Assembly (NCBI GenBank): GCA_904063045.1
Contig: CAJFCJ010000004.1
Coordinates: 1-64,000, forward strand
DNA: 64,000 nucleotides
Source of the DNA: Dimorphilus gyrociliatus
Taxonomy: Eukaryota; Animalia; Annelida
Direction: 5' to 3'
Shown here: positions 706 through 46,489 of the stretch, one piece after another
How positions within the stretch are numbered: position 1 is the first letter of the stretch
How the letters are laid out: each line of letters begins with the position of its first letter
Position numbers and translations under genes: made by a program
Notes under the pieces: model-generated
What the model saw: only the letters and a program-made list of their open reading frames with translations
Databases searched by the model: none
What the model was told of the DNA's origin: nothing

Positions 706-2219
706 ATGAAAACTCCTTTTGGGGTTTATATAATAAGGATTGCATTTGTTTTAATATTTGTTTCTTATATCGCATTTTCAATTTGGATATATGTGAACGA
801 TCTATCTGATCATCATTCATTTATTGAAAATGACAGAAATACGACTTCAAAGGCTACAACAGTAGCGTTAGGTAAGAGATTTATTTTTTTCTAAACATTA
901 GTCTAAATGCGTCCATGCGAGAAGGCAAGTATTCTATAACTACAAATTTTATTAGTAATTTTCGTGTTTTTTTTTTAAAAAAAAAAACAGCAATACATTT
1001 CTTTTTTGGCCTAAACTGTTCATTTATATTGATCTTCTTCATCCTTCTGATATTCTCGTTAAACTACGGACAAGTGTTCTCAAGATGTTTTTGGCTGTGT
1101 ATATTAATTGAAAATGCTATGTTCATCACTTCTTTTATGGTATATTTTACATCTAAAAAAGCTAGTTCTTGTAAAAGAAATAATAATGGAAGGAAATGTG
1201 CTCTCTCGCTAATTTTGGTGTTTTATCACGAACTTATATATATCTTCTTAGGGATAACTCATCATTTTAAGAAAAAATGGGAAGCTAAAATGAAAATTCG
1301 AGAAATTAATAGTGTTACAGAATTTTCAAAAGATTATCCTAATCAAGGAATTCTCAATTATGAAAGATTTTTAAATATCTCAATATACGCCTACATCAAA
1401 AGAACTGTATGGAAAAAGAATATTACTTTTTCAAGACTTTTTAAATATCTTGAAGGAAAATCTTATGATCTAAAATATCATGGTTTCAATAACCATAATA
1501 CGAAAAATCACAAAAAAACATTGAAAGTTTATCATAGCAATCAATGCAATTGTTATAAGAAATTAAAATATCCAATGACCTTAGATTTACCATGTAAATG
1601 GATTCATATGGATATTTTATTAAATACTTCAAAATTAAAAGACTTTAATCTTGTAAGCAATGATAATCTACTTGAATTGGCTATATTAAATAAAATAGAC
1701 TTTCATTGTCTGACTAAATTTGATGGAGAGAATAACTGTAAACAGAATTGTCTTATTGACATTTTATCATCTGTGAAAGATTGCGGTGATAAATTAACAG
1801 AATTATATAATTTTGTATTTGAAGGTCTCGTGATAAAGGAAGAAAGCATTAGCCTTTTGAAGCAATATTTCGAAGATGCTAGCAATAGTAGTACAAAATC
1901 TCTAATCAAACTATTAACAACAAAGATTTTTAAGATATGGCCCCCTCCCCTATGGTTTTATTCTCTATTGAAGATACGTCAATTAGTAAGGGCTGATAGA
2001 CAGTATGATGTTTTGAAAAATTATCAATCGACTATAGCCCTATTTATTCTAAATCCAACTGAGAATACCACGCCTTTTGATATATTTTCGGTTTTATCAT
2101 TGGAATATTTAAAAATATGGTCAGATAACGAAATAAAATATGGTATTTTTCAATCACTCATCCCCAATAAGGATGATTCAATAACACAATATATTTTTAC
2201 CAGAGGTCTTCCTATATAA
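706..2219 (+). CDS. A1: claudin-like 4TM + Cys/His + BC-box-like domain protein, ~464 aa; exons 706-871, 991-2219 (acceptor choice uncertain)
   Basis: ATG 706; donor GTAAGA 872; in-frame acceptor CAG 990. Motifs YHSNQCNCY, PCKW, LNKIDFHCLTKF, EGLVIKEES, WPPPLWFYSLLKIR, YGIFQSL. Confidence 0.8.
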
Positions 2220-2303
2220 TTGATGCTATTATCAGTGACGTAATCCATTAATATTTGAAAAGATTCGATGCAAACAAGCTTGAATTTATAATAGCTAATA
2301 ATT

Positions 2304-3740
2304 ATGAATGGAACCCTTCCAGTATGGATATATCTCATGAGATTATCTTTTCCTGGAATATTTGTAATGAATATCATTTTAACATTGAACTTTTTTTATG
2401 GTGACAAATGTATTACTTTGCCCAATAAAATAAACAATATTGTAAACAAACATGAAAGTGAAAGTAAGATTAACAATGAATATATTATATATAAATTTAT
2501 ATATATATATATATATATATAAATTTAATAATTATATTCTTTAGATCTCAGATTGCATATTTATAGGTTAAACATATCTTTTATTCTGTTTTTCTATCTA
2601 ATTCTGATATTATTGATAAATGATACAAAACTATTTATAACACTATGGTTTGCTGTTGTATGTATAGAAATAAGATCATCATTGGGAATACAAACATCTA
2701 CAAATGAATATTTAAAATGGAAACTATTGCAAAGCTACTTCTGCAATCATGATTTAATCAAGGCTAAATTTTTATTAATTTGCCCAAAACTTATTCTTTT
2801 ATATATCTTTTTATGCTTTATTGCAAAGTTAGTTTTGGAAGAGAAATTACTCATCCAACATCATAAAAGAATGGAATATATGCTGGAGTTGGAAGATAGC
2901 TTTTTCTATAAATGGGATAAGTTTGTAATATTCTCAAGGTATTATTGGGATGGGAAGATATTCCATAATTTAGTCACTCCTCTCCACGTTCTAACACTCT
3001 TAAATAATAATAATTATCCCAATGATGCTCTATATACTATAATCCAATCATCGGATGATCCTGATTTTGAAGATCATGAAAAGTATTGTAATTGCGAAAG
3101 GAAGAGATACATACCATTACATATTAAGAGACCTTGTTCCTGGGAGAAAATCGTTATAAGAGTATTTACTGATATTTTTCTCGATTTTGATAATCCGGCA
3201 GTAATCCACGAATTATCTGTTTTAAATAAATTGAATATCCATTGTTTAAAACAATTTAATTTTCCTATTGAATTAACAAATATGTGTTTAATTGACGTTT
3301 TAAAACGTGACGGTAACTTTAATGCTATATTCATTGAATCCTATAGATATTTCTCGGAGAGTTTAATAATAAGAGAAGATGGATTTTATCTTATAAATCA
3401 ATTTCTAAAAAAATTTAATAGGACATCGTATAAATTAATTATTAAAAATTACATAACTAAAGAAGTATTTAAAGTGTGGCCACCATCTTTATGGTATTTT
3501 TCAATAATGAAAATTCGTTATATTCTTAGAAAAAATATTAAATTAAATGCTTTCAAGTACCTTGAAACTGATATAAAGAATCTCGTTCTTTATCCTTTGA
3601 AAAATACAATCATTTTTAATATATCATCCCTTCTAAATCTATTATATTATGAAACGTGGAAAAATGAAATATTAGCTTTTGGAATTATGGAAGATTTACG
3701 CTCTTTAAAAGGAATATCGGATATGAAAAGAAGTATTTGA
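2304..3740 (+). CDS. A2 paralog, ~451 aa; exons 2304-2463, 2545-3740
   Basis: Donor GTAAGA 2464; acceptor TTTAG 2544; phase 1; intron contains (AT)n. Motifs HEKYCNC, PCSW, LNKLNIHCL, ESLIIREDG, WPPSLWYFSIMKIR. Confidence 0.85.
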
Positions 3741-3752: not shown

Positions 3753-3844
3753 GGGGACAGCCGGGATTCGAACCCGGGACCTCTCGCATGCTTAGTATAT
3801 TACAACTTCCCAAAGCGAGAATCATACCCCTAGACCACTGTCCC
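3753..3844 (-). tRNA. tRNA-Pro-TGG: tRNA-Pro(TGG), 20-nt intron
   Basis: GGGACAGTGGTCTAGGGGTATGATTCTCGCTT-TGG-G[AAGTTGTAATATACTAAGCA]TGCGAGAGGTCCCGGGTTCGAATCCCGGCTGTCCCC. Full cloverleaf, A and B boxes, T5 terminator. Confidence 0.95.
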
Positions 3845-4129: not shown

Positions 4130-4218
4130 GGGACAGTGGTCTAGGGGTATGATTCTCGTTTAGGGTGTTCAATACGCTAATTTACGAGAGGTCCCGGGTT
4201 CGAATCCCGGCTGTCCCC
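4130..4218 (+). tRNA. tRNA-Pro-AGG: tRNA-Pro(AGG), 17-nt intron
   Basis: Same exons with a T31-A39 pair; intron TGTTCAATACGCTAATT; downstream T-run. Confidence 0.95.
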
Positions 4219-4576: not shown

Positions 4577-4664
4577 GGGACAGTGGTCTAGGGGTATGAT
4601 TCTCGTTTAGGGAATTCATTCGCTAATCTACGAGAGGTCCCGGGTTCGAATCCCGGCTGTCCCC
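4577..4664 (+). tRNA. tRNA-Pro-AGG: tRNA-Pro(AGG), 16-nt intron
   Basis: Intron AATTCATTCGCTAATC; downstream T-run. Confidence 0.95.
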
Positions 4665-5625: not shown

Positions 5626-7025
5626 ATGCCAGAAAAGTTCGTTATCATTTGTTCTAAATTAACAGCATATGTCATTTTTATACTAATGACATTTAGTATA
5701 ATCTTGGAATGCAATATAATTTATAATGGATTTGCAAATGAAAATTATATAAATAATGATACAGGATTGTTCAAAATGAGAGAATTTCAACATGAGAGTA
5801 AGTATTGAAAGTATTAAATTTCTAAACAGAATATTAAAAACAAATTATTCCATGTATAGGAAACTCACGAATTATTATTGGATCAGTATCAATAACTTTA
5901 AAAATCTGTATAGTCCTCTTATCATGTTCTCCTTACGGAATAAAGAAACGAATTATATTTATTTTGTTTGCCATCTTTGAAGTCCTTCATTGGTTAGTGA
6001 TTGTAATTACTTACAATTCAATCTTCAATTTCAAAGATGACAAAGATATTATTATTACTCATCGTAACAAAATTTACAAATTGTCTGGATCTAGACTCAT
6101 CGATTTAGCAAGTATCGCACTGATAATGATGGTTAACTATATTGATAAGAAATTTAATACTTATACCTTCCAAAATTGTCATTCGGAGAAGTTATTTTCA
6201 AGTTTTAGCTACTCTCATGATGGATTAACGAGTAAATTGAAATTCTGTGAAATACAAACTATTGAAGATAGTTTAAGAGAAGATGTCTTTTATACCAGAT
6301 ATTCGAACAAAAAAGCTCTTTTGAGCATATTATCATCTCATTATAACATTGCTTTTAGGTGGAAATCTTTAAAACGGCTTTCTAAAGATAGAAAATTTAT
6401 AATTACAATAAATTTGAAGTTTATAGAAAATTTATATGCGAATAGAAGTCAGTTAAATCATATTTTCATTAGAGATATTGCTGAATTAAATAGTCTTTAT
6501 AATATCCACTGTTTGAGCTTGTTCAACGATAATATCGACAAAGAGAAAACATGTTTACTTGATATTTTAAGAGAAAACAAAAATTTTAATGGCCTTTTCT
6601 TGGATACTTATGAATTTTTAATAGAAAGTTTAATAGTCAGTGAGGATGGTTTGTCGTTAGTTAGAAAATTTGTCAACAGACTTGAAGACCGGAAACAGAA
6701 AGATATGGCTTTAGACTTAATAGTCAAGCGAATTTTCAGGAGTTGGCCTCCACCTCTGCTTTATCTTTCTTTGTTGAAACTTCGTAAAACAGTGAAGAGT
6801 GGACATTTAAGACTTTTGGAAAGTATGCCTCTACAAACTGCAAAATTTGTTATGAATCCTATAGAGAATACGCAATTCAAAGATATTGGTGCTGTTTTAA
6901 GACTAAAGAACGATAATTTATGGAGAACTAAACCTACCGGTATTTATGAAGAGATTAAACGTTTTCAGTGCAATTTTCAAACAGAAGTAGAAAACTGTGA
7001 GAAGATACAATTACTTAAGGTTTAA
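5626..7025 (+). CDS. A3 paralog, ~445 aa; exons 5626-5797, 5860-7025
   Basis: Donor GTAAGT 5798; acceptor TATAG 5859; frame hand-checked open into ORF 5964. Motifs LNSLYNIHCL, ESLIVSEDG, WPPPLLYLSLLKLR. Cys/His motif is lost. Confidence 0.88.
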
Positions 7026-8477: not shown

Positions 8478-9988
8478 ATGGAATACGCTAGGGAACTAGT
8501 CAGCTTCCTTAAAGAAAGGAGAAGCATAACGTTTGTTGTTACTACAATGGTTATAATAGTAACAGCGTTGATGCCTATTCCTGAATTATTTTGCCTATCA
8601 AGAGGATTTATAATTGTGAAACTACCGCACAGTTCCAGTTACGGTGCTCTATTGAATTTACCTCAAAACGGTATGAAGATTTAAATGTTTTAAATAATCG
8701 TTACTATCCTAATTGATAATAAAATTTCTTTCTTCTTTTTATAGCCTTGAAGACAACTATAATGACTCTAATAACATTTATTCCTGTATTTATTCTACTA
8801 ATAGCAGTTAGAGTTGGATTTGGTGACTATAAATATGTAACCATATCCGGAAGTATTCTAGCCATATTAGGCATTGCTGTCACTGTTTCCTATACAACAT
8901 TGGGTGTTCTAACGTATACGGATTGTTTAAATACTGTAGACGTTTTAAATTCTGCTTACAACGGCACAATCGAATGGAGCTGGGATGCTAAATATTATCT
9001 GTTTATTGCGAATTGCCTCCTGCAATATGCTTCGATTTTAATGCTATTTTCTTTAGGATTATTCTTCCTACATTGTCTGCTATCTGTGGAATGGAGGCAC
9101 AAACATGGACTCAACGGAGAACCTTATCGATATGCTGGTATTATAGAAATATGTCGGCTGTCATACAATGAAAATTCAAAATCAGTTCGTGTAGTTCTAA
9201 GTGAAAATATTGAAGCCTATCTGGAGAGTAAATGTCCACCAGTTATCTACAACTCTTGTGAACAAGATAACGAAACTGAAGACTATCTTAGGAACACACA
9301 TCGACAGCGTTGTCGATATCATTTTCCATTCTATCCTCTTCTGCTTCCCTGTTGCCGTAATCGTAATTGTTCATGGTCTGAGTTAAGAATAAGGATAAAA
9401 ACATTTGGATGGGAAACGAGAGAAACTTTCAAAAATATGATTCTACAGTTTGGATTATTAAATAAAGTGGATATTCATTTCTTTACAACATTCCATTTTA
9501 AACCATCTCAATGTTTTCTTGATTATATTAACTTTTCAAGGTCTTTCTTGTGCTATTACGAGCCAATTACTGAGGTATTGATGCTAAGAGAAGATGGATT
9601 TTCTTTTATCAGATGTTTGCGAATGTATGCGAATGATAGTCCTGAGAGGCATGCCTTACATATGTTTATAAACAAAACACTATTGTCGAATTCTCCACCA
9701 CCTTTGTGGTTTTTCTGCCTTCAAAAGGTGAGATTAATGATCCGTAATAGATATAGTAATTTCCTATGGAATGTATCAGAAAATGCGTTAATGTATAAAG
9801 ATTTCGTATTAAATCCTGCTGAGAATACTCATATTCAAGATATATATAAAGTATTAAACTTATCTTATAAGGATTATTGGCTATCTCAACAATCTAAATT
9901 TGGGCTATTAGAAGACTTAAATGAACTTGAATCCGAAAAACAAACACTTTTCGTTCAGTTACCCTTAAATTCTAGCTCTAGTTGTTAA
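8478..9988 (+). CDS. A4 paralog, ~478 aa; exons 8478-8670, 8745-9988
   Basis: Donor GTATGA 8671; polypyrimidine + TAG 8744. Motifs YTDCL, EWSWD, HRQRCRYH, CSW, LREDG, SPPPLWFFCLQKVR. Confidence 0.9.
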
Positions 9989-10518
9989 TACTTAAACAAA
10001 AAAGAAACAAAAAACTTCTGCTCAACTTATCTTGAACTCTTTTTTCATATTTTATTGAAAAAGAAGGAAAGTCTAACCATTGCATTTATTTTTCTATTAA
10101 ACAGTATCCTTTATTGTTTGTATTTACGTTTGTTTGGCAGGAAAATATCATTGATTTATAGTATTATTATTAATAATCTAACTAATTTTTAGATAGATAA
10201 AGTGAGAAAGAATGTTTATATTTTACAATTAATATTAATAAATTTGTATTATGTATAGTTTATTTATTATACATATATTTCATATATTAGTTATCTATCG
10301 TTCATCAGATTTTCGGCGTATCCTTTTGTCAAAGTAATTATTTATTAAATAAATTAGAGGGAATAGTGTATTGACAACGGCTACATCCGTTAATAGTCTT
10401 AATGTTCTATAAAATAAAGAAAGTAATTAGATTTTATTGTCTATTCTAAATTAAAATTAGAAATTATCTTCCATTGAAGGAAAAAGTAAAGTTCTTTTTA
10501 AATCTTTATGCGACGACG

Positions 10519-11109
10519 ATGGACATATCTAAATATAATATTAGAGGAGATCTAAAGGATCAGAAATGTTTGATTCGATTAATTATTGTTATTACTGTTC
10601 TAATAACAAGTATAATGCCATTTTTAGAAATGTTCTTTATAGATAAAAGTTATATTTTAGTTCGATTAGCATCGAATAATACACTAAAAGTTCAACATTT
10701 AAAATTGCCAAATAATGGTAAGGAACTTCATATTTCGGTTGTTTTCTTTAAATTTACTTCTTTTTTCTTTCTTTTACAAGATGATAAAACGTCATTGATG
10801 ATGATTGTTACTTACATGCCTGTATTTGGTATAGTTATGGGATTGAAAGTCTTATTTAAAGATAAAGGTTATATTTGTATTTCTTCCGCTATTCTTGTAC
10901 TTTTAGCATTGACTACACCGATAGCATATGTTAGTTTAGGAATATTAAACTATAGAGATTGCTTTCGAACATTGAAGATTCTCGAGAATGAGATTCTAGG
11001 TTGGGATTGGGGTGCTCGACACATGCTTTTTATATTTAATTGTATTGTTCAAATAGGTGTGGCCTATCTTCAAAGTATTATTTTCGTTCCGATGTGTTTA
11101 AGCCTATAA
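10519..11109 (+). CDS. A5: 4TM-only paralog lacking the cytoplasmic domain, ~175 aa; exons 10519-10717, 10781-11109
   Basis: Closest to A4 (LPNNG/LPQNG, YRDCF/YTDCL, GWDWG/EWSWD). 63-nt intron GTAAGG..AAG. Stop follows TM4; AATAAA at 11180. Confidence 0.7.
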   Translation: MDISKYNIRGDLKDQKCLIRLIIVITVLITSIMPFLEMFFIDKSYILVRLASNNTLKVQHLKLPNNGKELHISVVFFKFTSFFFLLQDDKTSLMMIVTYMPVFGIVMGLKVLFKDKGYICISSAILVLLALTTPIAYVSLGILNYRDCFRTLKILENEILGWDWGARHMLFIFNCIVQIGVAYLQSIIFVPMCLSL

Positions 11110-11331: not shown

Positions 11332-12745
11332 TTATTTGTAATCAACTAGACAGTTAAGATTTTCAAATATTCCGATTCGATGATTCTTTATTATGCAAAT
11401 GCTTCTTTCTGATAGATTAAGTAATGAGAAAATATCTAAAGGAGAGTCTGAACGAAGAGGGTCACAGATAATTGATAAATAATAGTCGCTACAAGGTTCT
11501 CCTAAGGATTTTGGAAATCCTTGTCTTATCATTTGCCTATTTTTAATTAAGCAATAAAACCAAAGAGGAGGAGGCCATTGTTTGAAAAGTCGGCTAGTTA
11601 CCACTTCAACTAGGTTTATGTCATAACAATTTTCATTTAATAGATTGATAAGTGAAAGTCCATCTTCTCTAAGAATTAAGCTTCCTGCAATTTCAACCTT
11701 GATCTTTTCATAATCCACTGTGGATCTTCCAATTGATTTTCGTATAACATGATGCAAATTCAAGTAATTTGAAGGAAAGTGAAAGATTGTAAAAATATGA
11801 ATATTGAATTTGCATAAAATGATCATATTGAATAATATTCTTCTGGAGAAATCGAGTTTTAAAGCATTTACTCTAATTCTTAACTTTTTCCAATTACAAT
11901 CCATCTTTTTATTCTTTGGTATTAAAATTGGATAATATGGATAATGGTACCTGCACTCCTTAGCATGCATCTTAGGAATATGAAGTAACGTTTCGCTATC
12001 TTCATAATTAGTATTGAATATATAATTACCATTTTCTTTAAAAGAAAAATGCAAAAGATCGCATATATCTATAGTTGTTGTTGTGATTGTCTTTCGGTCA
12101 ATAGAGTAATTTAGGATTATGATACTATCGGCTATCGTGCTAGGTCTGCGAAGATTAGAAATGGGAATTCCTTCCATTTCATAAGTTCTATTAGTTTCTT
12201 TAAACAAATGATAGTTTATCTTAAAATAGACAATACCCATCAAAAATAGGAAAAACGATTCTACTAAGAGAATATAATAACTGCAATTCCAGTTCCATTC
12301 AAATTGTTCTAAATTAATATAACGTTTTAAAGTCAGAGAACGTCTATGACAGATAAATACACAATTTAAACAATGAAGTATGCCAGCTAGCATAAAACTA
12401 ATTAGATTAGTTAATTTATATGAAAATAGTGAAAAAATGCATATTAATATAATTCCAATTGAGAAGCTTATATTATAATAAAGTAAAATCCTCTTATCAC
12501 CTGATAAAAACAAGAAAGAATATTATTAATTGTTTCATTTATAGTAATACAATCTTTATGAAAATTAATTTACGGTTTGAATGAGATATTTCCTTTTCAA
12601 TAGACGTTTCGCTATTATTCTTATAATTTATGATTAAAACATTAGTAAATATTGATGTAAATGATAGAATAAGGAATATCGCCCAACCAATGTTTATACT
12701 TGCTATTAAGGTTATATAAAGATTCTTGTTATTTACTTTCATCAT
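11332..12745 (-). CDS. A6 paralog, ~446 aa; exons 12745-12574, 12500-11332
   Basis: Donor GTAAAT 12573; acceptor TCAG 12501. Motifs HAKECRYH, CNW, SLILREDG, WPPPLWFYCLIKNR. Confidence 0.88.
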
Positions 12746-13781: not shown

Positions 13782-13879
13782 GGGACAGTGGTCTAGGGGT
13801 ATGATTCTCGTTTCGGGTTTAGTCATATAAGCAAATTCGAAATTACGAGAGGTCCCGGGTTCGAATCCCGGCTGTCCCC
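13782..13879 (+). tRNA. tRNA-Pro-CGG: tRNA-Pro(CGG), 26-nt intron
   Basis: Anticodon CGG with T31-A39; intron TTTAGTCATATAAGCAAATTCGAAAT; downstream T-run. Confidence 0.95.
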
Positions 13880-14257: not shown

Positions 14258-15700
14258 ATGAGGAAATGCTTCAAAGAACCGTTAGGTATTGGATTTTTAA
14301 TGATTATGGCTACTGCCCATACAAGTATACTTTTCATTTCATTTGTATATATTTCTAATGGATTAATTATTTTAAAAATTGAAAATAACTCTTCATTTTC
14401 CCTAAATCAAACAAATAATTATACAAATGATTCGAGTAAATCATTAGAATACTTAATACCAGAGAAAAAAGGTATGTTTCTTTTGTTTCTTTATCTCCTT
14501 ATATCATGTCTTCTCTATCAACGTTTGAAAGCAGATCACATGGACAAGCTATTTATAGTTTTCGCTTCAACGTTCCTTATATCAGGCCTCTTTCCTCTAC
14601 CGGCGAATGCTAAAACTCAAGATTTAATATTAGGATTATCTCTAGCAATATCACCAATAGGTCATACGATAATTGGCTATTTTTATTTTAAACGTTCATA
14701 TATTGAAATAGATATCTATTCGGATAATAATAGTGATAATACGATTATCAAGGAAAATGGTAAAGCATTTTATGGTTTTCAAATTAATTCCATTATTCAT
14801 GGATTGAATTTTTGTATCCTAATTATATTCGTTTCTTTGGCGAATATGGACTTTTTATTAAATATAAAAGTAAGCCATTCAGAACGTAGACGTCCAAACG
14901 ACTATATTCTTGTAGAATCTTTTTCGTTTAACAATGGAATTCTAAGTGATTTGTTCAATTTAAAAGAATCATTAAAAAGACCTGTGATTTTTAAAGATTG
15001 TTTATTTACTGCTTCCACTGATGATGTTGATCGATACATAAAAAAAGTTCATGCTAAAGAATGTAGATATCATTATCCTTGTTATCCTTGTAAACTTTCA
15101 AGTTTATTTTGTAAATCGAAAAGTTGTTCTTGGAAGAGAATCAATGTTTATTCCTCTGTTGTTAATGAACTTTATTTTGACTTTAGTTTAACAACAACTA
15201 TAAAAAATATAGCTTATTTAAATAAATTAGGTATTCATTTTTTAACACCATTCTCAATTCGTCCGAACTGTTCAATTTTACATGATGCAACTTCAGCTTT
15301 AAGCTTCCATGAAACTTTTAAACAAATATTAGAGATATTTATCCTAAGGGAAGAAGGATTATCGTTAATTAATAAATATATCCAACTCATTCCTGAAACT
15401 TATAAGAGGACGATGATAATAGAACATTTAGTGAAACACACATTTAAAATTTGGCCTCCTCCTCTTTGGTACTTTTGTCTCAAAGATATAAGATTATATA
15501 TAAGAAGGGATTTTACTACACACTATCTCAACTCTATGCCAGAATATTACAAGGAATTCATCCTTAATCCTGCAGATAATAGATTATCGATGGATATACT
15601 GTCAATTTTTTATTTGAAATACGAAAATATTTGGACAATGGAAGAGTGTAGCTTTGGATTAATTCAGGATTTAAGAGTCTTAGGAGAATCCTCCGTTTGA
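14258..15700 (+). CDS. A7 paralog, ~459 aa; exons 14258-14471, 14535-15700 (in-frame stop-free intron)
   Basis: Donor GTATGT 14472; CAG 14534 (AAG 14531 is an in-frame alternative). Motifs HAKECRYH, CSW, WPPPLWYFCLKDIR, MPEYYKEFI. Confidence 0.88.
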   Translation: MRKCFKEPLGIGFLMIMATAHTSILFISFVYISNGLIILKIENNSSFSLNQTNNYTNDSSKSLEYLIPEKKGMFLLFLYLLISCLLYQRLKADHMDKLFIVFASTFLISGLFPLPANAKTQDLILGLSLAISPIGHTIIGYFYFKRSYIEIDIYSDNNSDNTIIKENGKAFYGFQINSIIHGLNFCILIIFVSLANMDFLLNIKVSHSERRRPNDYILVESFSFNNGILSDLFNLKESLKRPVIFKDCLFTASTDDVDRYIKKVHAKECRYHYPCYPCKLSSLFCKSKSCSWKRINVYSSVVNELYFDFSLTTTIKNIAYLNKLGIHFLTPFSIRPNCSILHDATSALSFHETFKQILEIFILREEGLSLINKYIQLIPETYKRTMIIEHLVKHTFKIWPPPLWYFCLKDIRLYIRRDFTTHYLNSMPEYYKEFILNPADNRLSMDILSIFYLKYENIWTMEECSFGLIQDLRVLGESSV

Positions 15701-33222: not shown

Positions 33223-33314
33223 GGGGACAGCCGGGATTCGAACCCGGGACCTCTCGCATGCTTAGTATATTACAACTTCCCAAAGCGAGAATCATACCCC
33301 TAGACCACTGTCCC
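33223..33314 (-). tRNA. tRNA-Pro-TGG: tRNA-Pro(TGG), 20-nt intron
   Basis: Identical to the copies at 3753 and 22285. Confidence 0.95.
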
Positions 33315-33668: not shown

Positions 33669-35229
33669 CTACGAGTCCAGGGATAAAAATATACCATAAC
33701 ATAAATATTTATGCTTCCAATATGTTTTGAATGATAGATTTAAAACTGAGTTTAACTCAAAAAGTTCAAAACTAAATGGATTATAAATAAAACATTCGTA
33801 ATCTTTAATTCCTTTATTGAACGAGTTTAATTGTAGTCGACCTCCCTTCTGTAAAATTCTACATTTCATCAACGATAGATACCAGAGCGGAGGTGGCCAT
33901 ACTCTAAAAACTACCTTCGTCAAATGATCAATTATCATTTGTTTATGCGCTTTTTCGTATAACATATTCATCATTGAATTAATAAGCGCCAAACCATCTT
34001 CTCTTATAATTAAACTCTCAACAACATATCTAAAGATTTCTTCAAATATAGTATTAAAATCGCTTCGTCTTTGTAGATAATCAATTAAGCTTATATTAAT
34101 ATTTTCTGGACATTGAAATTTAGTTAGAAAACTAATATCCATCTTATTCATAATTGATAAATGTAAAAAATTTGTATTAATTAACCATTCTGAATGTAAA
34201 TTTAACTTTTCACCATCAATTAATATTTCGTATTTATACCATTCGCAAATATTTCGATTAGACGCCCAACAATTACATTCTTTTGAATGCATCTTTTGTA
34301 ATTCGTAAAAATGAACGTCGTCCGATTGTTTTATTGTATAAATTAATTTGTTTTTAATCGATTCGTTTATAAAATCTTCGTATATCATTTTAAGATTCTC
34401 TTCATTTATTGAGAAATTCCATTCGGATGAGTTGTAATCGTAAACTATCTCAATAAATTCAATATTTTCTGGATCCCATTCGTATTTAACAAATTTTATT
34501 ATATCTTTGTCATCGCTATCGTCTTCTTCGCAGTTGATGGATACAAAATCCGATGGAAATTGAATTAAAAATGATGAATCTTCGCTCTTTGAATTAAAAT
34601 TATCATTTGATGAAGTTCTATTTCTATATACCAATAGAATGAATGTAGTTGTTAGCATAGACGTTAAACAGGAGCATCCAATCAAAAATATACCATATCC
34701 TAACCCAATCGTACATACTTTATTGTTTACACTATAACTTTTAGCCTCAAAACTAGCTCCTATTAACATTGTGAACATGCTTAAAAATCCAAGTAAGAAA
34801 TGCGATACGAAGCAATAAATAATGTTTCTTTCTCTCTTTTTCCTACGTTCTAACCAACCGATTATATACAGAAATAGTAAAATAATCGCGTATACAAGTA
34901 GGATGATCAGAAATATTAATATAAAGGCAGATATTCTCTGAAAAACTAAAAAAAAGGGAAAAGATGAAGATAAGAGAGGTTAATTTGATTGTTTTCTTTT
35001 TAATTATTTTTTCTTCTTTATTACCTTTTGTCTTTAAGTTATTTCCATGATTCATTATATTTCTATTGAATATCGAATAATAATTTTTACCAAATATCTC
35101 TTCACCATCTTCAATGTCAAGGCGAACCCAATAACCACAAAACATAGACATCAAATGTAACGATAAAGTAATACATCCTAAAGGTAGGATGAGTGTTCTA
35201 GCAGCAAAGGGGAGAAGTAGTTTTATCAT
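33669..35229 (-). CDS. A14 paralog, ~493 aa; exons 35229-35025, 34945-33669
   Basis: Donor GTAATA 35024 (35090 is an alternative); acceptor TTTAG 34946; frame hand-checked. Claudin-like YWV and GLGYG motifs; HSKECNC, CEW, WPPPLWYLSLMKCR. Confidence 0.82.
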
Positions 35230-36891: not shown

Positions 36892-38540
36892 ATGAAACTA
36901 CGTATTAAGCATATCATTAATGCTTTAATATTCTTGATAACACTTATTAGTTTCGTTATATACTGTATGGGTTTCTTGAAGGATTGCGTAACAGTTACTT
37001 ATCATATAATAGAAAATGGATCCAGAAGGGAATACGTATTAAAATTTTTCTCAAGCTATCTCAATGTTATGGGTAATAATTGTTTTTTTTTTGAATATTT
37101 AAAATATCTAAAGTATTTTACAATAAAAGAAACAATTTAAAAATGATGTTAAAATTGTAAAATAAGATTTCAACTAGAGATTAAATATCTTACTTTTTTT
37201 CCCTATGCTATCAATCTTTATTATTTATATATCTTTTTATATTTTTTTTTTGTTCTACTATCATTACAGGTTCAATTTATCTAGTACTATGGTTGATAAA
37301 TGGAAATTTACTTTTCCTCTCGCTATTTGGTGTTTATTATCATCGATTAAGGAGTGCCTTGTACAATGGAGTGTTGTTTATTTCTCTTACAATCCAGTGG
37401 ACAGTTATCATTATAAATGCTACTATAGTTGTATGGGAAAATACTGATTCCTCTACAGATCATATACAATTATCATTTGGATGGGGTTTTATTAATTTAA
37501 CAATAGCCTATGGTTTAGTTTTCATTGTTCTACTAGTTAAAATTCAAGAGAGATATGTTTTTAGGAAGAAATGTTTAAAATATCGTGAGGACTTTCGTTT
37601 GCTAGAAGAAGGGACTGTCTCTGTTAGATCACCAAAGTCAACTAGCCAATATTCGAGACTTTTCGTTCATTTTATTAGACATCAACAAGATTTTAAAACA
37701 AATAGTTTCCATCAAATTTCATTTCATCCGTCAGAATATTTTGACCACGACCAATCTTCCCTACATTCACCGTCTCAAGTGGAATTATGCAATCAATTCT
37801 TGAATATGAAAAAATTCATTATATTTGGTTTAAGGTCAAAAGCAACTAATAATAACTCAATACTCGAAAGCCAAACAATAAATTTGTCTCATTATCACGC
37901 TAAAGAGTGTTGCTGCACTCTGCCGGCATTGAAGAAAAATTGCGATTGGATGAAATTGGAGGTGCAATTAGATTTTAGGAGGTTTCATAGTTATTCAAAT
38001 GAATCGGGAGTAATTACTTTCAACAAAATGGATATAGCTTTTCTAAATAAATTGGGTTTCACTTTTGTTACACCAACAAATCATCCAATGTATCCGGCAA
38101 CAACGCTTATAGAAATTTTCCGAAAGTTTGAGGACTTTTCAGTAAGATTCTGTGAATTGTGTACATTTATTGTGGAAAGTTTAATCATTAGGGATAATGG
38201 ACTTTACTTATTACAAAATCTCTTGAATGAATTTGATACCTCAAAGAAACAATTTATCATTAAAACGCTAAAAGAAGGAATTTTTACTTCTTGGCCTCCT
38301 CCATTAAAACTGTTATCATTACAAAAGTCAAGATATCTCATTAGACTGGGTTATTCTCTGTGGAATTGTGAGGGCATTACACATGATCTTAGGTCATTGG
38401 TTCATGATCCATCAAAAAATACTGAAAGACTTAATATTTTTAATATTTTTAATCTAACATATGAATCCTATTGGAATCATTCAGGACTAGAAGTTGGTAT
38501 ATTCGAAAATTTGAATTGTCAATTTACAACAAAACTATAA
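36892..38540 (+). CDS. A15 paralog, ~483 aa; exons 36892-37072, 37270-38540
   Basis: Donor GTAATA 37073; acceptor TACAG 37269. Motifs LSFGWGF before TM4, HAKECCC, CDW, WPPPLKLLSLQKSR. Confidence 0.85.
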
Positions 38541-39420: not shown

Positions 39421-41069
39421 ATGGCTCAGATTTGCAGGCATATTATCAGGAAATGTGTTATCATTACATTGGTTTTATTTAGTGTTTTTCTTTACGTTAT
39501 CGCTACTCATCATAGTTATTTAAAAGTATCTATCTTAGAAGAAACCGGAAATACTACTGAATATTCACTTCCTAAAGATTTTAACTCTTTAACGCGTAAG
39601 TAATTTATCCTGTTAATATTGTAATTGTGTACTAAATATTGAAATTTTTAGGTAAACTACTATGGGGGGCATTGTATTTTCTTAATGCCGTTATGTACTC
39701 CTTACATATTACCTTTGCCTTCTTTTATATTGTTATTTCATGTAATTCAGCCTATAAGAAAAGGGGTGAAAAATACTTTCATAGGTTTATTATAGCTACT
39801 TTTGTTACTACGACGCTACAATGGTTGGTATTTGTGTTAGAGTATTATCAATTCTATCATAAGCATATTACGAAAAAAACAAAATATCTGGTTAAATTTC
39901 AAAGTGGCTTCTTTCTCACTCTAACTTCCTACGGATTAACTCTAATGCTGGTAATTGTTGGTATAGAATCTAATATTCGTTGGAAGAATATAATTGGACG
40001 TTTTAAAGTAATGTCATTAAAGTTTCCTCCTTCACCTCATATACCTCCCGAAGCTGTTTCTGGTTCACCTCCGAGAAACGTACCTAAAAATCTCGTATTG
40101 AACTTTTATAAATGGAGTTGGAAAGTTGAGAAGGGAAAAATAAATAGGGTAAACTTTAAACCGTATTATAAAAATTACCTGAGAATGTCAAAGAAGACAC
40201 CTACATTCTATAGTCTTACTCCCAATATATCATACGATAGAATGTTTCTATATAGTCAATCAAAGCAAATGAACTATTATCATTTTAATGAATGCACATG
40301 TACAAAACAGTATTATTCCTGCTGTTCATACAAAAAATGCAATTGGAAAAAACTCGAAATTCAAATAGGCATTGAGCGATTACATGGAAATAATAATAAC
40401 AACTTTCATGAGGATAACTCTTATATTAAGGTTACAGATATTGCCTTTCTGAACAAACTAGAATTTACAATACTCACTTCATTTAGTTTGCCTGAAAATT
40501 CGGATTGGAATCTCATTAACTTCCTTCAACAACAGCACGAATTTAATGGGAAATTTTCAGAAATCTATATCCCGCTGGTTGAAAGTCTAATCATAAAAAA
40601 CAATGGTATAAGCCTTGTTAATTCTTTGTTGAAACAACTGATTAATCCTCAGCATAGACAAATGATAGTATCTCTTGTTGTTGATGAAATTTTCAAGATA
40701 TGGCCTCCTCCTTTAAAATTTCTTAGTTTATTACAATCGAGATATTATATAAAGGAACAGAAAAAATTATCGAATTTTAGAAATATACCTCCAGCTATTG
40801 AGAAACTTGTCTCGAATCCTTATGATAATACTGATGTATTTAATATATTTGATTTTTTGAATCTTACATACATGAATTATTGGACAGAAAAAGAGTTAAG
40901 ATTTGGAATATTTGAAGAATTACCGATAAAAAGCTATAAATTAAATATCTTAGAATTAAATAATGATTCACAAACTGTACAAACTATTGAATTTTCAACA
41001 AGTAGTTCGGATAACAAAGTAACTTATACCACTCACCAAGAAACGCTTGAAAAAGACTCGCACGTATAA
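39421..41069 (+). CDS. A16 paralog, ~530 aa; exons 39421-39595, 39652-41069
   Basis: Donor GTAAGT 39596; acceptor TTTTTAG 39651. Motifs HFNECTC, CNW, WPPPLKFLSLLQSR, IPPAIEKLV; extended tail ending DSHV. Confidence 0.9.
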
Positions 41070-41605
41070 ATTTTTACATCGTTGTTGATTATCTAATGAA
41101 TATTTAAAATTTGTAAAAATTACCTCAATTTGTGTTTGTCATTTGTTAAATTTATGATTAATATATAAACTTTAAAGGTTGTTTTTTTTTTAAATTCAAC
41201 TATTGTATAAAAACTTATTAAAACAATAAGTTACATTATTATTTCAACGGTATACATCTATAATTGAGTTGATAGACTCTTTTTCACAAAAGTTTGTAAT
41301 TGATTACTCAGCATTTTTCTCTTTTCTTTCTGTTATATTTTTATTGCTTTTGTATATATTAAAAAAAAAATACGAAAACATAATGCTCCTAAATAAATAA
41401 TAGGTTTAATTGGGTAACATACATGACTCCTTTGTACTCAAATATACATTCACTTCTATTCGATACTTTGATAGCTACCTGAACATGACCTTGAATGAAT
41501 GGGATAAATCGTTAAAGAAACAGATAAGAGCGTAGTTTTTGGAATATTACCTTGGACAGTTGCTTTCGAAACATTCATAAATATTCTGACTGTGTAGTGT
41601 TCAAT

Positions 41606-43156
41606 ATGTTGCGTAAAATCTTACTCTTCCTGAAAAAAAATGATCATTTTGTATGGATGTCAATTTTAATTCTGTTAGCAGTCATTCTAAATTTGAAAAC
41701 AGCACAATTTCAATTCTTTCATACTTCATTTAAAGAAAATCAAACAGGTAAATATCTTTTTCTCTATAATTATATAAGAATTGTATCATTCTTTTTACTA
41801 AAACATAAGATACACCAATCAATCCTTTTCTATGTTTGTTTTTCTTGTTTCTTAACAGAAATAATTCATCTGTTACTATCGTCGTTAAGATGTTGCGGAA
41901 CAGTAGTAATGCTACTTTCATATCCATTGGGAGATCGAATCAGGATGACTCAAAAGTTTACTCTCATCTGTTTCATTATTATACTCTGTTTATCGATTAT
42001 AGAAATTCCGTTTCTTGTTAAGATGAATAACAACAAGCATTCAAATTTTAACTCGGAATATCTCACTGATATTATATGCCACATTCTAAATGTTGCTATT
42101 ATCCTTCTCTCAATTTTTATATTGGTTTTAAAGATGTTTAATATAAAATTAACGGATTTTTTCTGCATCTATAAACTTTATCATTGGAAATCGGAAAACA
42201 ATTTTATCTTACAGCCTGAAGCCTTTGTTCGTCATTATCCGTCAAATATTTGCTTGGGGATGAAGGTTAATTACAGAGTTTACAGGTTAAAAGGAAGTCA
42301 TGGGAAAATGCGGTATCATCATTCTCATCCATCGCTATATTCTGATGAAGAATCATCTTGGAAAGAATTTATGTCAGACCCGGTTTTTCAAACAGATTCA
42401 AAGATAAGATGCCAACCAAATAGTAGATATCACGGGGCAAATAAAAAATTTATAAGATCATACATGAATACTTGTCATAATCAAGAGTGCAGAAACAATA
42501 AAATTATTCATACTCAGAAAGAGTGTAACTGGAAGAAAATGGATATTGAAATTGATTTTGAAATACTCAGAAATAACAATAATGACGACAGAAAGAAATA
42601 TATCGATTATTTTAATTTAGTATTCCTACATAAACTTGGATATTCATTCTTATCCACATCGAACTATGAGAATTATCCAACTTTTACAATACTTGACTAT
42701 CTGAAAATGCAAACTAACTTTAATTTTATCTTTGAAAATTTATACGTTTTTATTATCGAAAGTTTAATTATAAGAGAGCCCAGTCAACGTATGATTCAAC
42801 TACTTTTAGATAAATTAGATAACCCTTGGCATATAGAAGCAGTTGTAGTTTACCTGTACGGGAAACTATTTAAACAATGGCCGTTTCCTTTATGGTTCTC
42901 AAGTTTACTTGTAATAAGGTCTTATCTACGCAAGGGAATGAAAATGGACACATTGTCGTTAGCTCCACTTTCAATTCAAAAGTTTATCTCGGATCCAACA
43001 TCAAGAATAAGTAATATTATGAACTTTAGATATATAGAATATTTTACTAATGATCATCTAAAATATGGTTTATTCGAAAGTCTCAATATCATTGATGGAA
43101 AACTAGAAAAAGTTTGTACAACAAAAACGGCTACCACTTTAGATTCAGCTGTATAA
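41606..43156 (+). CDS. A17 paralog, ~479 aa; exons 41606-41747, 41859-43156 (111-nt in-frame stop-free intron)
   Basis: Donor GTAAAT 41748; polypyrimidine + CAG 41858. Motifs HNQECR, CNW, ESLIIRE, WPFPLWFSSLLVIR, APLSIQKFI; ends DSAV. Confidence 0.85.
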   Translation: MLRKILLFLKKNDHFVWMSILILLAVILNLKTAQFQFFHTSFKENQTGKYLFLYNYIRIVSFFLLKHKIHQSILFYVCFSCFLTEIIHLLLSSLRCCGTVVMLLSYPLGDRIRMTQKFTLICFIIILCLSIIEIPFLVKMNNNKHSNFNSEYLTDIICHILNVAIILLSIFILVLKMFNIKLTDFFCIYKLYHWKSENNFILQPEAFVRHYPSNICLGMKVNYRVYRLKGSHGKMRYHHSHPSLYSDEESSWKEFMSDPVFQTDSKIRCQPNSRYHGANKKFIRSYMNTCHNQECRNNKIIHTQKECNWKKMDIEIDFEILRNNNNDDRKKYIDYFNLVFLHKLGYSFLSTSNYENYPTFTILDYLKMQTNFNFIFENLYVFIIESLIIREPSQRMIQLLLDKLDNPWHIEAVVVYLYGKLFKQWPFPLWFSSLLVIRSYLRKGMKMDTLSLAPLSIQKFISDPTSRISNIMNFRYIEYFTNDHLKYGLFESLNIIDGKLEKVCTTKTATTLDSAV

Positions 43157-44900
43157 TCTTTCTTAGTAGATATAAATTATATATATATATATATACGAAT
43201 ATGTGAAAAATAAACAACATTGTAATAATATATTATTTACTATTTAAGTGAATTAAAAAAACAAATCATCCTATTTTCTTTATAGTATTAACTGCAGATT
43301 ATCTTTACTATGGTAAATGAATAATCATTTCTTTCAGAATGATTTAATAGACTTTTCTTATCTATCTTCATTTAAATCTAGAAAAGTAAGATTGATTATC
43401 TTATTATTGCTTTTATTATTCATTTTTCCTTTCCTCTTAAACGCCTTCTTGATCGATAATCCATCAAGAATATTTATTTGATTGTCTTATCAAAATAAAA
43501 TCAAAGTCACTTTAATTAATTAAACTTTACGTTTTCATCTTTTAATTAAATATACATTACTTATTTATTATTTCTAATAAGTAAGCAATTAGACTTTTTC
43601 TCTTTTATTTAATATAGTAAAGCATATATTTTGATGAATACGCCATCTATTGATTAAAATTGGAAATATTTTATAGAAGAACAAAAAAATATCTTTTCAG
43701 ATATTACAATTCAAAAAAGAAATCAGAGAGAAAATTAGTTTCTTTTTAAAAAAAAAAGATGTTTTTTTATCTAATTGAAGCTCAATTTAGTATGGATAAA
43801 TTTAGCACTATAATTGCGGGATATAAATGGAAGACACTATATATAATAAACACATAAGGAAGATAGAGCATGGAATCACACATCTTATATATTTATATAT
43901 TTTTGGTATACATTTACAATACGTAACATATTAATTCTGATAACCTAAAATAACAATTATCCCTTTTCGAATTAAGCTTAAAGCATAATAAGTTTTAATT
44001 CTATCTCTCTTTTTTCTCTTTCTCTCTCTCTCTCTGTCTCTCTCTCTTTTTATCTTTATAACTTACAGATGAAATGCTGCTTCACATGGTATAGAATTTT
44101 TTTTACCCAAGAGCATTAAATGTTTTATTATAGTTTATTTTAAAGAGACAAAATATAAAGGTAATAATAAAGTATACTGTTTATCAATTCTCTAGAAACT
44201 CTTTTCATGCATCATTTTCAACGAATTGTAACAAGAAAAACCTCTATTTAGCATCTCATATATCATTCGAGAATATTTTTGAGAAACAATAAAGCTATTA
44301 TATAAAAATGTTAGAAAGAGGGAAACAAGAAGAAGAAGAAGAAGATGGGAAAGTAAGAGAAAGAGAGAGAGAAAGAGAATGGAAAGGGAGAAAATGAGAA
44401 GAGGTTGAGAAGGTTATTAATAAAATTCTTTTTTTAGCTGTTTCTGCCATGTATTATTGTAAATAATATTCCAAATATTTACATATAACACATAATACAA
44501 TATATTTCTTTAATATAGATTTTGTCTGAATTCTTTTTCCATTTGATTTTACATGAAATGTAAGGAAATTTTCAACAGAATTCGTGTTATTTATATTCCA
44601 TCATCTCCTTTATTGTATCTTCCTTAGCTTTATAATTAGTATATTTGTTACTATAAAAAGTAATTGTTTGTGTTAACATACACAATATATAAAATATATA
44701 TTATTATATATTTTGTACATATTCTAAATGTATAGGTGTCAATACAAGTATCTATATTAAACTATGACCTGTATGCAGTATATTTTTAATTTGTATGCAT
44801 ATTTTTTAGTATTAAAAGGAGGGCAGTAATTTAAATTATTATATATTATTGCTATTTAATTGATAATACTCGCTTGGATGCACAGAATTATATTTATGTA

Positions 44901-46489
44901 TTATAATTCTATACATTCGAATATTCCGAATCTTAACGGCTTATAAGTCCATTCATAGACGTGCCATAAGCTCAGTGTTGAGAAGATGTCGAAAATTTCA
45001 GAATTATTATACGGATCGGCGACGAACAATTGAATCATTTCCGGTATATGTCCATTAGTAGAAATGCTCTCTAAAGAGCCACCGTATCTTAAAAACCGCC
45101 TACACCGTTGTAGGCTTAAATACCATAGAGGGGGTGGCCACTCTTTAAATATTAGACAAGTAACGCACTCCCTAACCATTTTTCTATGCTGTTTGTCCTC
45201 CAATTTAGCGAGTAGTACATTTACCAGGAATAGACCATTATCCCTGATAATTAAACTTTCTACGATGTAGACGTACATTGCTTTAAATCTTGATCGAAAG
45301 TCTTTCTGCTTTTGCAAATAGTCAATAAGTGTCATATTTATATTTTTTGGATAGTTAAAGGGTGTAAGAAAGGTAAAACCAAATTTATTCATAAACGTTA
45401 ATTCCAAGGCACTCCAGCGGCTTGTATGAGTAGCTCGAGAGTTTGACGTACAGAAATCTACTTGAATCTCCAATTTCTTCCAAGAGCAATTTCTTCTATC
45501 GGAACTAGAGAAAAATTGCCAAGAACAGTTACACTCTCTAGAATGTATGTCGCACAGAAGAGACAATTGTCTATGTCGGCAAATCTCTCTATACTCTCCG
45601 CAAAGACAGACACTAAATATAGTTGTGTCAACTGAGGTTTTTAATTCTGCAAAACTATCGTACAGTTGATAAGGGAGATCTTCGTTGGAACTACTTAAGG
45701 CGTCTAAAAAACGATTTGTATCGAAGAAAGTCCAACCCAATCTGCTAGACTTTTTGTCCCATTTATAACGTATAAATTTCACTTTTAAATCTGTTGATAC
45801 AATTTCAGGTACGAATTGATGGACAATAGCCTTTCTAGGATAATTAAAAACGGAAAAAGCAGCTAAAGCTGTTGCTCTTTTCGAGTCTCTGAGTAATGCT
45901 ATTAAAAGTGACTTCTTTTTGGAATGTAGTACCGCCAAAAGAAAGGACAATGCAGATGACATGAGGGCTAATGAAAAGCCAAATTGTAAAACAACGTTTG
46001 ATCGGCCACGCTTTACAGCCATTCTATCCCAAAAATATACTGCGGCTTCGATTAAACTCGATAGCCATATCATTGCTGTCGATAAACAGCAAACTCCATA
46101 TATTATTACGCAACATCTCTTTATTCTTTTGCAGTTTGAGGAAGAGCATTGTTCTAAGATAAAAGTTAGAGTTGTCATTAAACCGCCAACAATTATTAAA
46201 CCGAAATTTCCAACTAATAAATCACGTGACAATCTTCTCCACACTACGTAAATAGCAAGAATTTATTATAGAATAAGAGGAAATAAAAAAAACTCTTACG
46301 GGTAAGATTCGTCCAATTACCGTTTGAAAATCCAATGTATATTGTTTTCTCTTTGATATTGGAAGTTGGATCAGGGTTAACAGTTATCCAATAAGGATGG
46401 GATAATGATTTCAAATGAATCAAGGGATTTAGAAAAGCAATGATGAATATAACAAAATTTACCAAGAATGAATAACAGCAAGGTGACAT
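44901..46489 (-). CDS. A18 paralog, ~510 aa, the most claudin-like N-terminus; exons 46489-46300, 46243-44901
   Basis: Donor GTAAGA 46299; acceptor GTAG 46244. Motifs YWI, FGFSLALMSSALSFLL, HSRECNC, CSW, WPPPLWYLSLQRCR, IPEMIQLFV. Confidence 0.9.

Follow-up and report, generated by a model that had tools for sequence, protein, structure and literature searches.

Can a protein that crosses the membrane four times act as the substrate receptor of a cullin-RING ubiquitin ligase? For membrane proteins, ubiquitination usually proceeds through RING ligases embedded in the membrane or via PPxY adaptors for Nedd4-type ligases and, to our knowledge, the known Elongin BC-cullin receptors are soluble proteins. 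The question is raised by an array of genes in the annelid Dimorphilus gyrociliatus, located in the first 64,000 nt of contig CAJFCJ010000004.1 (assembly GCA_904063045.1); this AT-rich stretch (about 27% G+C) was analyzed as a whole and is referred to here as the window. A preliminary description of the window had reported a family of claudin-like tetraspans fused to a conserved cytoplasmic domain, and had proposed that this domain recruits cullin-RING ligases through motifs resembling the Elongin BC-binding motif (BC box) and the cullin box of known receptors. The reading that we tentatively favor is of the same kind, namely, that the family consists of membrane-anchored Elongin BC-cullin receptors.

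Four-pass membrane proteins with a large cytosolic domain

A tblastn search with the last 235 amino acids (aa) of one copy recovered exactly 17 copies of the C-terminal domain, all within positions 915 to 46244 and on both strands, with E-values from 1e-14 to 1e-49 and 27-42% identity. In all 17 copies (F01 to F17), the large open reading frame (ORF) is intact, and the family alignment recovers the motifs LNKL..HFLTPF, LID.L, ESLIIREDG, WPPPLW, and DIFS.LNL.Y...W....YGIFE.L, in agreement with the 17 full-length paralogs with shared motifs described before. Each paralog comprises a small exon 1, which encodes the first transmembrane (TM) helix, and a large exon that encodes TM2 to TM4 and a cytosolic domain of about 300 aa, rather than the 230 aa or so given in the preliminary description; the length of about 300 aa is that of the folded domain in the structural model discussed below. 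Two to three hydrophobic helices are found in each large ORF. The six first exons that were read all begin with Met and encode one hydrophobic helix, and in four of the six, N-glycosylation sequons are located just past this helix. In a second species, small ORFs directly upstream of the orthologs match the segments 706-873, 30491-30309, 39421-39600, and 46471-46328 of the window (29-79% identity). The two outermost genes begin, with the start codons of their first exons, at positions 706 and 46489.

The proteins are thus predicted to contain four TM helices, with both the N-terminus and the C-terminus in the cytosol. The assignment of four helices made earlier is borne out, given that TM1 is encoded by an upstream exon that is kept across species and is present in the annotated protein model P0011, and that TM2 to TM4 are encoded by the large ORF. 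The cytosolic location of the tail follows from the position of TM1 on a separate, conserved exon 1, together with the sequons after TM1 in four of six first exons. In the family translations, TM1 is preceded, and TM4 is followed, by basic residues.

The tail is a predicted domain without a match in fold libraries

A model of the tail of F17 (residues 150-447, 298 aa) was obtained with AlphaFold2 from 32 sequences, that is, the window copies plus the sequences from the second species, and was predicted with high confidence (predicted local distance difference test, pLDDT, 88; predicted template modeling score, pTM, 0.86). In the model, an alpha/beta part, with four strands and a long helix, is accompanied by a loop with His and Cys residues and by a helical part. 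The loop carries the pattern H-x3-C-x1-3-[C/H]-x4-22-C-x-W in 11 of the 17 window copies and in 21 of all 32 sequences; in the rest, the pattern is lost. In F17, this site comprises model residues ~86-108, encoded at ~45470-45540 on the minus strand. The H-x3-C...C-x-W loop is probably a zinc knuckle that ties the loop to the long helix.

Full-length and tail models were searched against the PDB (with Foldseek, and with VIA-align in a wide search and a second look), the AlphaFold DB clusters, Swiss-Prot, the ESM Atlas, and BFVD. For the tail, no known fold was recovered in these libraries, and when the genome's own protein is left aside, the best values were an E-value of 0.2, a Z-score of 3.6, and a TM-score of 0.36; on the VIA-align scale, models without a clear match usually still reach Z-scores of 7-8. 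Sequence searches of the PDB with three family queries yielded chance matches only (a GH17 hydrolase, YrdC, and SAM37). With Pfam, neither whole ORFs, nor the C-terminal segments of the 32 members, nor their consensus gave a match to SOCS_box, VHL, F-box, BTB, or Mab-21. A Mab-21/cGAS-like fold, considered on account of the zinc-like H..C..C motif, was ruled out by the fold searches. An F-box reading of WPPPLW was likewise dropped, having no Pfam or language-model support and lacking the conserved Glu. Thus, the tail is a domain that is confidently predicted by modeling and is without a match in any fold library searched, and neither profile nor fold searches assign it to an already characterized family; such an assignment was among the outcomes that the preliminary description had named as refuting its receptor reading.

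A segment near the end of the tail fits the BC-box consensus in 10 of 17 copies

The BC-box consensus is [TSP]Lxxx[CAS]xxx-hydrophobic (PMC13342108, PMC13061254). A Cul2 box has the form hydrophobic-Pxx-hydrophobic-xxx-hydrophobic (PMC5216831), and a Cul5 box contains LP-hydrophobic-P (PMC13342108, PMC5216831, PMC13061254). In the family, the BC-box consensus fits the segment that begins at WPPPL in 10 of the 17 window copies, the minimum stated earlier, and in 21 of 32 sequences when the orthologs are included. The Leu at position +1 and the Arg at position +10 are invariant (32 of 32 sequences), so that the Arg reported to follow the BC box, as it does in SOCS boxes, is present throughout; likewise, the claim that all 17 copies carry Cys, Ser, Ala, or Thr at the key position holds. 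In the model, a predicted helix (residues 224-237) opens at the Leu of PPPL and is followed by helices 242-245 and 253-260, as assigned by DSSP; the blocks covering helix 224-237 have pLDDT values of 94-98. The predicted order of these helices is that of SOCS and VHL boxes. Furthermore, the tail lies on the cytosolic side, where Elongin BC is found.

The conservation of the family follows the pattern of a variable recognizer combined with a constant docking site. The paralogs share 8% identity across the TM part, 10% across the first tail half, and 30% across the helical half; the value reaches its maximum of 51% in the WPPPL helix and is 16% in the cullin-box-like region that follows. The last two values are also what would be expected if the tails bind Elongin BC without forming an active ligase, that is, as membrane sinks, regulators, or pseudo-receptors, with only a proline-bearing minority recruiting a cullin. 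Such a minority exists, in that the Cul2-box pattern with its proline is found in four of the 17 copies only (F06, F15, F16, and F17); these are the four fits quoted in the preliminary description, all of which were confirmed, and no further copy fits. A single-proline version like that of ASB9 (LPEDLKQFLL, compared with MPEYYKEFIL) is similarly restricted to a minority of copies. However, orthopoxvirus ANK/BC proteins recruit Cul2 by the BC box alone (PMC13342108), and a weak cullin box therefore does not exclude assembly of a ligase. Binding of Elongin BC without ligase activity appears improbable to us.

Similarity to real Elongin-BC boxes is weak but specific

Six Elongin-BC boxes with PDB-confirmed sequences, those of ASB7, ASB9, SOCS2, SOCS3, VHL, and Vif, were compared with the family. 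The family hidden Markov model aligned to the SOCS box of ASB9 from end to end and in the motif register, with a score of 8.9 bits that was reached by one of 3000 shuffles; for scale, a comparison of the SOCS3 box with that of SOCS2 gives only 12-13 bits. When the tail was tiled with six sub-profiles, the one covering positions 217-262 gave 8.2 bits for ASB9, 6.9 bits for VHL, and 6.8 bits for ASB7 (4, 7, and 18 of 5000 shuffles, respectively, scored as high; P about 0.001-0.004), with the ASB7 box ranging from 3.9 to 6.8 bits across the family profile tests. The other five sub-profiles scored at most 0.6 bits on all six boxes, and reversed boxes scored at most -1.0 against the 217-262 profile. 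In language-model feature searches with the C-termini of F17 and F06, which are about 31% identical, SOCS_box, Vif, and VHL clusters came first among the named families, and for F06, 41 of 100 named-cluster matches belonged to families of these three types. The same search with residues 1-215 as a control returned no SOCS_box, Vif, or VHL clusters. Taken together, these comparisons point to a similarity to Elongin-BC boxes that is weak but specific to segment 217-262.

This specificity speaks against the view that the tail is a new cytosolic domain unrelated to ligases, for example, a junctional or trafficking scaffold, in which WPPPL forms the best-packed helix of the core and the BC-box fit is coincidental. 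A coincidence would have to account for a similarity confined to one of six segments and seen on three of six independent Elongin-BC boxes, for the flat reversed controls of segment 217-262, for the convergence of the language-model matches on three unrelated families that share only the BC box, and for the location of the motif, which opens a helix and lies close to the C-terminus in the cytosol. There are, nevertheless, many observations that fit the unrelated domain well. In the prediction, the whole 298 aa form a single compact unit, in which the WPPPL helix may be buried, and confidence is highest at the motif. The similarity to real boxes amounts to 7-9 bits only, in an ambiguous register, and an estimate from residue frequencies gives about 0.3 chance occurrences of the motif pattern alone in a 300-aa protein. 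Five to seven copies have lost key positions.

These points, and those that follow, weigh against a receptor function. Position +5 is Ser, Cys, or Ala in 16 of the window copies and Thr in one, and the hydrophobic residue at +9 is replaced by Asn, Thr, or Ser in four of the 17 and by Cys in two more. The cullin-box proline is absent from most copies, as detailed above, and the LP-hydrophobic-P of the Cul5 box, which in full reads hydrophobic-x2-L-P-hydrophobic-P-x2-hydrophobic-x2-Y/F-L, was found in none of the 17. The module is not terminal but is followed by a conserved tail of about 40 aa. With the family profile, no score was obtained on the boxes of SOCS2, SOCS3, and Vif. In Pfam, SOCS_box was matched by none of the 32 members, nor by the consensus, at E-values up to 10, nor by the full-length ORFs, such that this check suggested in the preliminary description turned out negative. 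Comparison with a SOCS2-only profile by hhalign gave no signal, a result that carries little weight because this profile barely detects real ASB boxes (E-values of 0.1-0.8); with a three-sequence seed, hhalign gave P = 0.008, and the register was displaced by four residues. The ASB9 alignment also moves to this displaced register when the sub-profile is used, and the ASB alignments can slip by four residues, or one helical turn, owing to the repeated R-x-x-I-R pattern. With values of 0.65-0.77, the language-model scores do not reach the reliability level of the tool, and they are not independent of the motif. Finally, structural searches of the tail model returned no SOCS- or VHL-box protein, although such a short box is hard to detect within 298 aa.

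On balance, the BC-box and cullin reading of the preliminary description stands with respect to the architecture of a tetraspan plus a domain, the fit of the motif, and the segment-specific similarity, and fails with respect to Pfam SOCS_box, to SOCS2, SOCS3, and Vif, and to LPxP. A domain unrelated to ligases is quite possible in our estimation. On the reading that we tentatively favor, these would be claudin-like four-pass proteins, with both ends in the cytosol and a lineage-restricted C-terminal tail of about 300 aa, consisting of a variable alpha/beta half (with the probable zinc knuckle in two thirds of the members), a helical half, and a SOCS/VHL-box-like module near the end. The putative module would comprise a BC-box-like helix that opens with PPPL-x3-[S/C]-x3-[LIV]-R, a short second helix, and a third one, which in some members has a cullin-box-like beginning of a hydrophobic residue and Pro. 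We infer Elongin BC binding, the choice of cullin, and the targets: the module would dock Elongin C/B and, thereby, a cullin-RING ligase, and the hypervariable membrane part, together with the alpha/beta half, may select membrane or sub-membrane proteins for ubiquitination.

Comparison with known receptors

The ASB-type SOCS box (ASB9, PDB 3ZKJ; ASB7, PDB 8Y1U) belongs to receptors of the Elongin BC-Cul5 system, and in the case of ASB9, the family profile spans all 38 residues of the box. In this alignment, PPSL corresponds to PPPL, a Cys to the Ser/Cys at +5, Ile-Arg to the [LIV]-Arg at +9/+10, and LPEDLKQFLL to the MPEYYKEFIL helix of F06. The predicted helix pattern is the same, and the BC-box-to-proline spacing is 26-29 residues in the family, compared with 25-27 in ASB7 and ASB9. 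Unlike ASB proteins, the family has no ankyrin repeats, and has an integral-membrane anchor and a conserved extension of 40 aa after the module. Moreover, most of its copies lack the proline and none has LPxP, Pfam SOCS_box is unmatched, and the register is ambiguous.

With respect to the VHL box, the VHL helix TLKERCLQVVRSLV aligns in the motif register, such that C162 falls on the Ser/Cys at +5 and R167 on the invariant Arg at +10. Membership in the VHL-box class is defined by binding. The receptors of this class, such as VHL, ZYG11, LRR1, and FEM1, differ from the family, which has no beta domain, LRR, or ARM part and fits the Cul2-box pattern in the four of 17 copies named above only. According to PMC13061254, InterPro annotation covers the SOCS box alone and is lacking for the BC-box-Cul2-box combination, and for this reason, the failure of Pfam does not exclude the VHL-box class.

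Viral BC-box proteins, such as Vif of human immunodeficiency virus and MGF505-1R of African swine fever virus (ASFV), are recognized by the same short consensus and not by a domain model; for ASFV MGF505-1R, the BC-box assignment was confirmed by co-immunoprecipitation and mutation (PMC13342108). Vif clusters are among the language-model matches of the family, whereas the family profile gives no score on the Vif box itself, and the viral proteins are soluble. A literature search recovered no paper on a tetraspan or other integral-membrane family of SOCS/VHL-box receptors, consistent with the earlier statement that no description of a claudin-like/BC-box fusion family is known, and the main text of the genome paper contains no mention of the family, of claudins, or of ubiquitin.

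The array is old and under purifying selection

A search of 1.84 billion protein cluster representatives with the tail profile retrieved 16 proteins, all with E-values below 1e-40, and nothing weaker. Two of the 16 are annotated proteins from the window, and the remaining 14 come from the second species and are 27-76% identical to particular window copies. Thus, among these cluster representatives, the family is narrowly distributed, being present in two species only. The second-species sequences are located on loci L001-L007, which are Logan contigs of SRR23372216, SRR23372228, SRR23372229, and SRR23372231, and also SRR31984834. In a maximum-likelihood tree, 11 window copies are each paired with one sequence of the second species with a bootstrap of 100, so that there are at least 11 one-to-one orthologs, and gene order is kept on the three multi-gene contigs retrieved from the second species, which makes the orthologs partly syntenic. 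The ratios of nonsynonymous to synonymous substitution rates (dN/dS) for ortholog pairs are 0.07-0.25; because dS is saturated (>1.2), these values are rough, upper-range estimates only. The one-to-one orthologs, the kept gene order, and the low dN/dS in spite of saturated synonymous sites together show that the array is old, orthologous between the two lineages, and under purifying selection, and that it is neither a recent burst nor a set of pseudogenes.

The same data bear on the possibility that the array is decaying or selfish DNA, that is, a collection of pseudogenes or a gene carried by a transposon. The lineage-restricted distribution, the tRNA-like elements interspersed in the array, and the one truncated copy (10474-11109) are compatible with such an origin, but the 17 intact large ORFs, the constraint and orthology just described, and the annotation of two copies, one of them with a spliced model, are not what decay would leave behind; we consider this explanation highly improbable. 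The two annotated copies are F09 (P0011, the spliced model) and F17 (P0001).

At least four second-species members (P0002, P0012, P0015, and P0017) have no close ortholog in the window. P0012 lies upstream of the F01 ortholog, and therefore, the array of D. gyrociliatus may extend past the left edge of the window. As for expression, one sequencing run, X2, contains 0.96 of the words of one gene, compared with 0.70 of those of a stretch of 7.5 kb, of which about 67% is genic; such shares would fit a transcriptome. An RNA run contains 7% of the words.

Probable origin from claudin-like neighbors

Plain claudin-like tetraspan genes, at least two of them with PPxY-rich tails, are located at 54391-62561. 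TM3 and TM4 of the family member P0002 are 38% identical to one of these plain tetraspan genes (58009-58566; E-value 2e-11), although the profile of the whole family compared with the neighboring tetraspans gives only P = 0.003. The neighbors at 54-62 kb match the Pfam models Claudin_3, Claudin_2, and PMP22_Claudin below threshold (E-values of 2e-4 to 1e-2; 19.7-21.9 bits compared with cut-offs of 26.7-28.7). No family member exceeds any claudin/PMP22 cut-off in Pfam, the best match being Claudin_2 with an E-value of 0.05 (P0002). A claudin-like nature, as assigned in the preliminary description, would thus derive from the homology between P0002 and a neighboring gene, and not from direct claudin matches, which are sub-threshold for the neighbors and the family alike. 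Given that TM3-4 of P0002 resemble 58009-58566 and that the neighbors match claudin models just below threshold, the family probably arose from local claudin-like genes, with the new domain replacing a short tail.

As in the claudin/PMP22/EMP superfamily, the family proteins have four TM helices with cytosolic ends, but their membrane part has diverged to the 8% identity among paralogs given above. A Trp is found shortly after TM1 in several first exons; the claudin first-loop signature is W ... GLW ... C ... C. Paired cysteines were not present in the six first exons read, the first loop continuing into exon 2.

The PPxY motif recruits Nedd4-type HECT ligases, and NDFIP and LAPTM4/5 are multi-pass membrane adaptors that recruit these ligases via PPxY tails. 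Two of the neighboring tetraspans, at 54391-55008 (minus strand) and 56453-57400 (plus strand), have tails that end in three PPxY motifs each (PPPY..PPPY..PPPY and PPPY..PPPY..PPSY, respectively), and from their sequences, these sister genes look like membrane adaptors of the same type. The concept of a multi-pass protein whose cytosolic tail brings a ubiquitin ligase would be common to these adaptors and the family. However, the family has a 300-aa domain in place of the short PPxY tail of its neighbors, has no sequence relation to NDFIP or LAPTM, and would recruit a cullin-RING ligase via Elongin BC, not a HECT ligase, through a folded domain, not a short linear motif. That the family represents the first integral-membrane SOCS/VHL-box receptors, with the docking module within a domain without a known fold, and that this lineage switched between the HECT and cullin classes of ligases, is possible but doubtful.

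Between the family array and the plain claudin-like genes, at 50018-50548 on the minus strand, there is a gene for a small protein that passes the membrane once, contains repeats of the Thr-rich unit TTEDKRDT, and, according to Pfam, is weakly podoplanin- or mucin-like. The claudin-like ORF at 61365-62006 (minus strand) starts inside a (GA)n microsatellite, translated as ERERER, and the true start of this gene is probably located further downstream or on another exon.

Organization of the individual genes

In the descriptions below, the motif segment is the stretch from WPPPL to the cullin-box-like region. The first four genes are encoded on the plus strand. Exon 1 of F01 (706-873) encodes Met, TM1, and the beginning of the first outer loop, where an NTT sequon is located, and shares 41% identity with the small ORF that, in locus L003, lies directly upstream of the ortholog of F01; the large ORF (915-2219, TM2-4 and cytosolic domain; motif segment 1938-2072; tblastn 2e-25) fits the BC box with PLWFYSLLKI and has the ortholog P0010 (bootstrap 100). 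The large ORF of F02 (2553-3740; motif segment 3477-3611; 6e-31) fits with SLWYFSIMKI, and its ortholog P0006 adjoins P0010 in L003. F03 (5964-7025; motif segment 6744-6878; 2e-14) also fits the BC box, has a long branch in the tree, and is without the H..C..C..W motif. F04 (8747-9988; motif segment 9692-9826; 6e-19) fits with PLWFFCLQKV and is the ortholog of P0014. It is followed, at 10474-11109 on the plus strand, by the 18th gene of the family as counted in the preliminary description, which had given 18 members. The 17 complete copies stand, but this one is an N-terminal membrane fragment, the translation of which resembles the TM region of F04 by eye, and tblastn detected no tail domain downstream. 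The fragment represents either a pseudogene that has been truncated or a short gene in its own right.

F05 (large ORF 11332-12513, minus strand; motif segment 11443-11577; 2e-20) does not fit the BC box, having Asn at +9. Two plus-strand genes follow, both fitting: F06 (14258-15700; motif segment 15452-15586; 6e-20) with PLWYFCLKDI and then the Cul2-box-like MPEYYKEFI, and F07 (16294-17457; motif segment 17227-17361; 8e-21), the ortholog of which is P0016. The next six genes are on the minus strand. F08 (18798-19961; motif segment 18861-18995; 2e-22) is the misfit with Thr at +5 and has a long tree branch. The large ORF of F09 (23774-24964; motif segment 23864-23998), a misfit with Thr at +9, is 100% identical to residues 58-464 of the annotated P0011, the first ~57 residues of which map to exon 1 at 25085-25257 (minus strand; TM1, first outer loop, and three N-glycosylation sequons); P0011 is, therefore, a spliced model with a short intron. 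F10 (25436-26881; motif segment 25529-25663; 5e-30) fits the BC box and has the ortholog P0005. F11 (29031-30218; motif segment 29145-29279; 1e-26) fits with Ala at +5 and is 76% identical to its ortholog P0008, with a dN/dS of 0.12; its exon 1 (30309-30491, minus strand), with TM1 and the sequons NDT and NKT, shares 79% identity with the small ORF that lies upstream of P0008 in L005. For F12 (30930-31973; motif segment 31026-31160; 5e-36), which fits the BC box, the coding match reaches upstream to ~32204, a 423-aa ORF of L005 aligning with 75% over 32204-30933; a candidate exon 1 at 32257-32382 (minus strand) is weak, with a 31% match to the exon-1 peptide of P0011. F13 (33669-34778; motif segment 33765-33899; 4e-47) has Cys at +9 and the ortholog P0007.

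F14, F15, and F16 return to the plus strand. F14 (37293-38540; motif segment 38292-38426; 8e-40) is a misfit with Ser at +9. Exon 1 of F15 (39421-39600), with TM1 and an NTT sequon, shares 52% identity with the small ORF that lies upstream of P0004 in L001, and the large ORF (39639-41069; motif segment 40701-40835; 1e-49) has Ser at +9, followed by the Cul2-box-like IPPAIEKLV, and the ortholog P0004, with a dN/dS of 0.12. F16 (41552-43156; motif segment 42878-43012; 2e-32), the ortholog of which is P0009, fits the BC box and continues with the Cul2-box-like APLSIQKFI. The array ends with F17 on the minus strand, the modeled protein, the large ORF of which (44901-46244; motif segment 45006-45140) is 100% identical to the annotated P0001 and has Cys at +9, followed by the Cul2-box-like IPEMIQLFV; its exon 1 (46328-46489, minus strand) encodes Met, TM1, and YW after the helix, and matches the small ORF that lies upstream of P0012 in L003 with 29%.

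Between the family genes, there are about 14 tRNA-like elements of 88-103 nt, which score 48-50 bits with the Rfam tRNA model. They are located at 3753-3844, 4130-4218, 4577-4664, 13782-13879, and 18545-18647, in a tandem of four with a period of 177 nt at 20670-21291, and at 22285-22376, 22603-22690, 23071-23172, 28237-28324, and 33223-33314. ARAGORN assigns them as Pro(GGG/AGG), as Lys(UUU), or with an odd two-base anticodon, and they are either intron-bearing tRNA genes or tRNA-derived repeats.

Implications

Whatever its function, the tail domain is a good target for structural work and for the study of how new domains originate. If the family does consist of Elongin BC-cullin receptors, it would represent a new way of coupling recognition in the membrane to a cullin-RING ligase, with the tetraspan reading the target in or at the membrane and handing it over directly to the Elongin BC-cullin ligase. 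The family would then be a natural counterpart of engineered membrane-protein degraders and a clear case of a lineage-specific receptor array in which the recognizer is variable and the docking site is constant.

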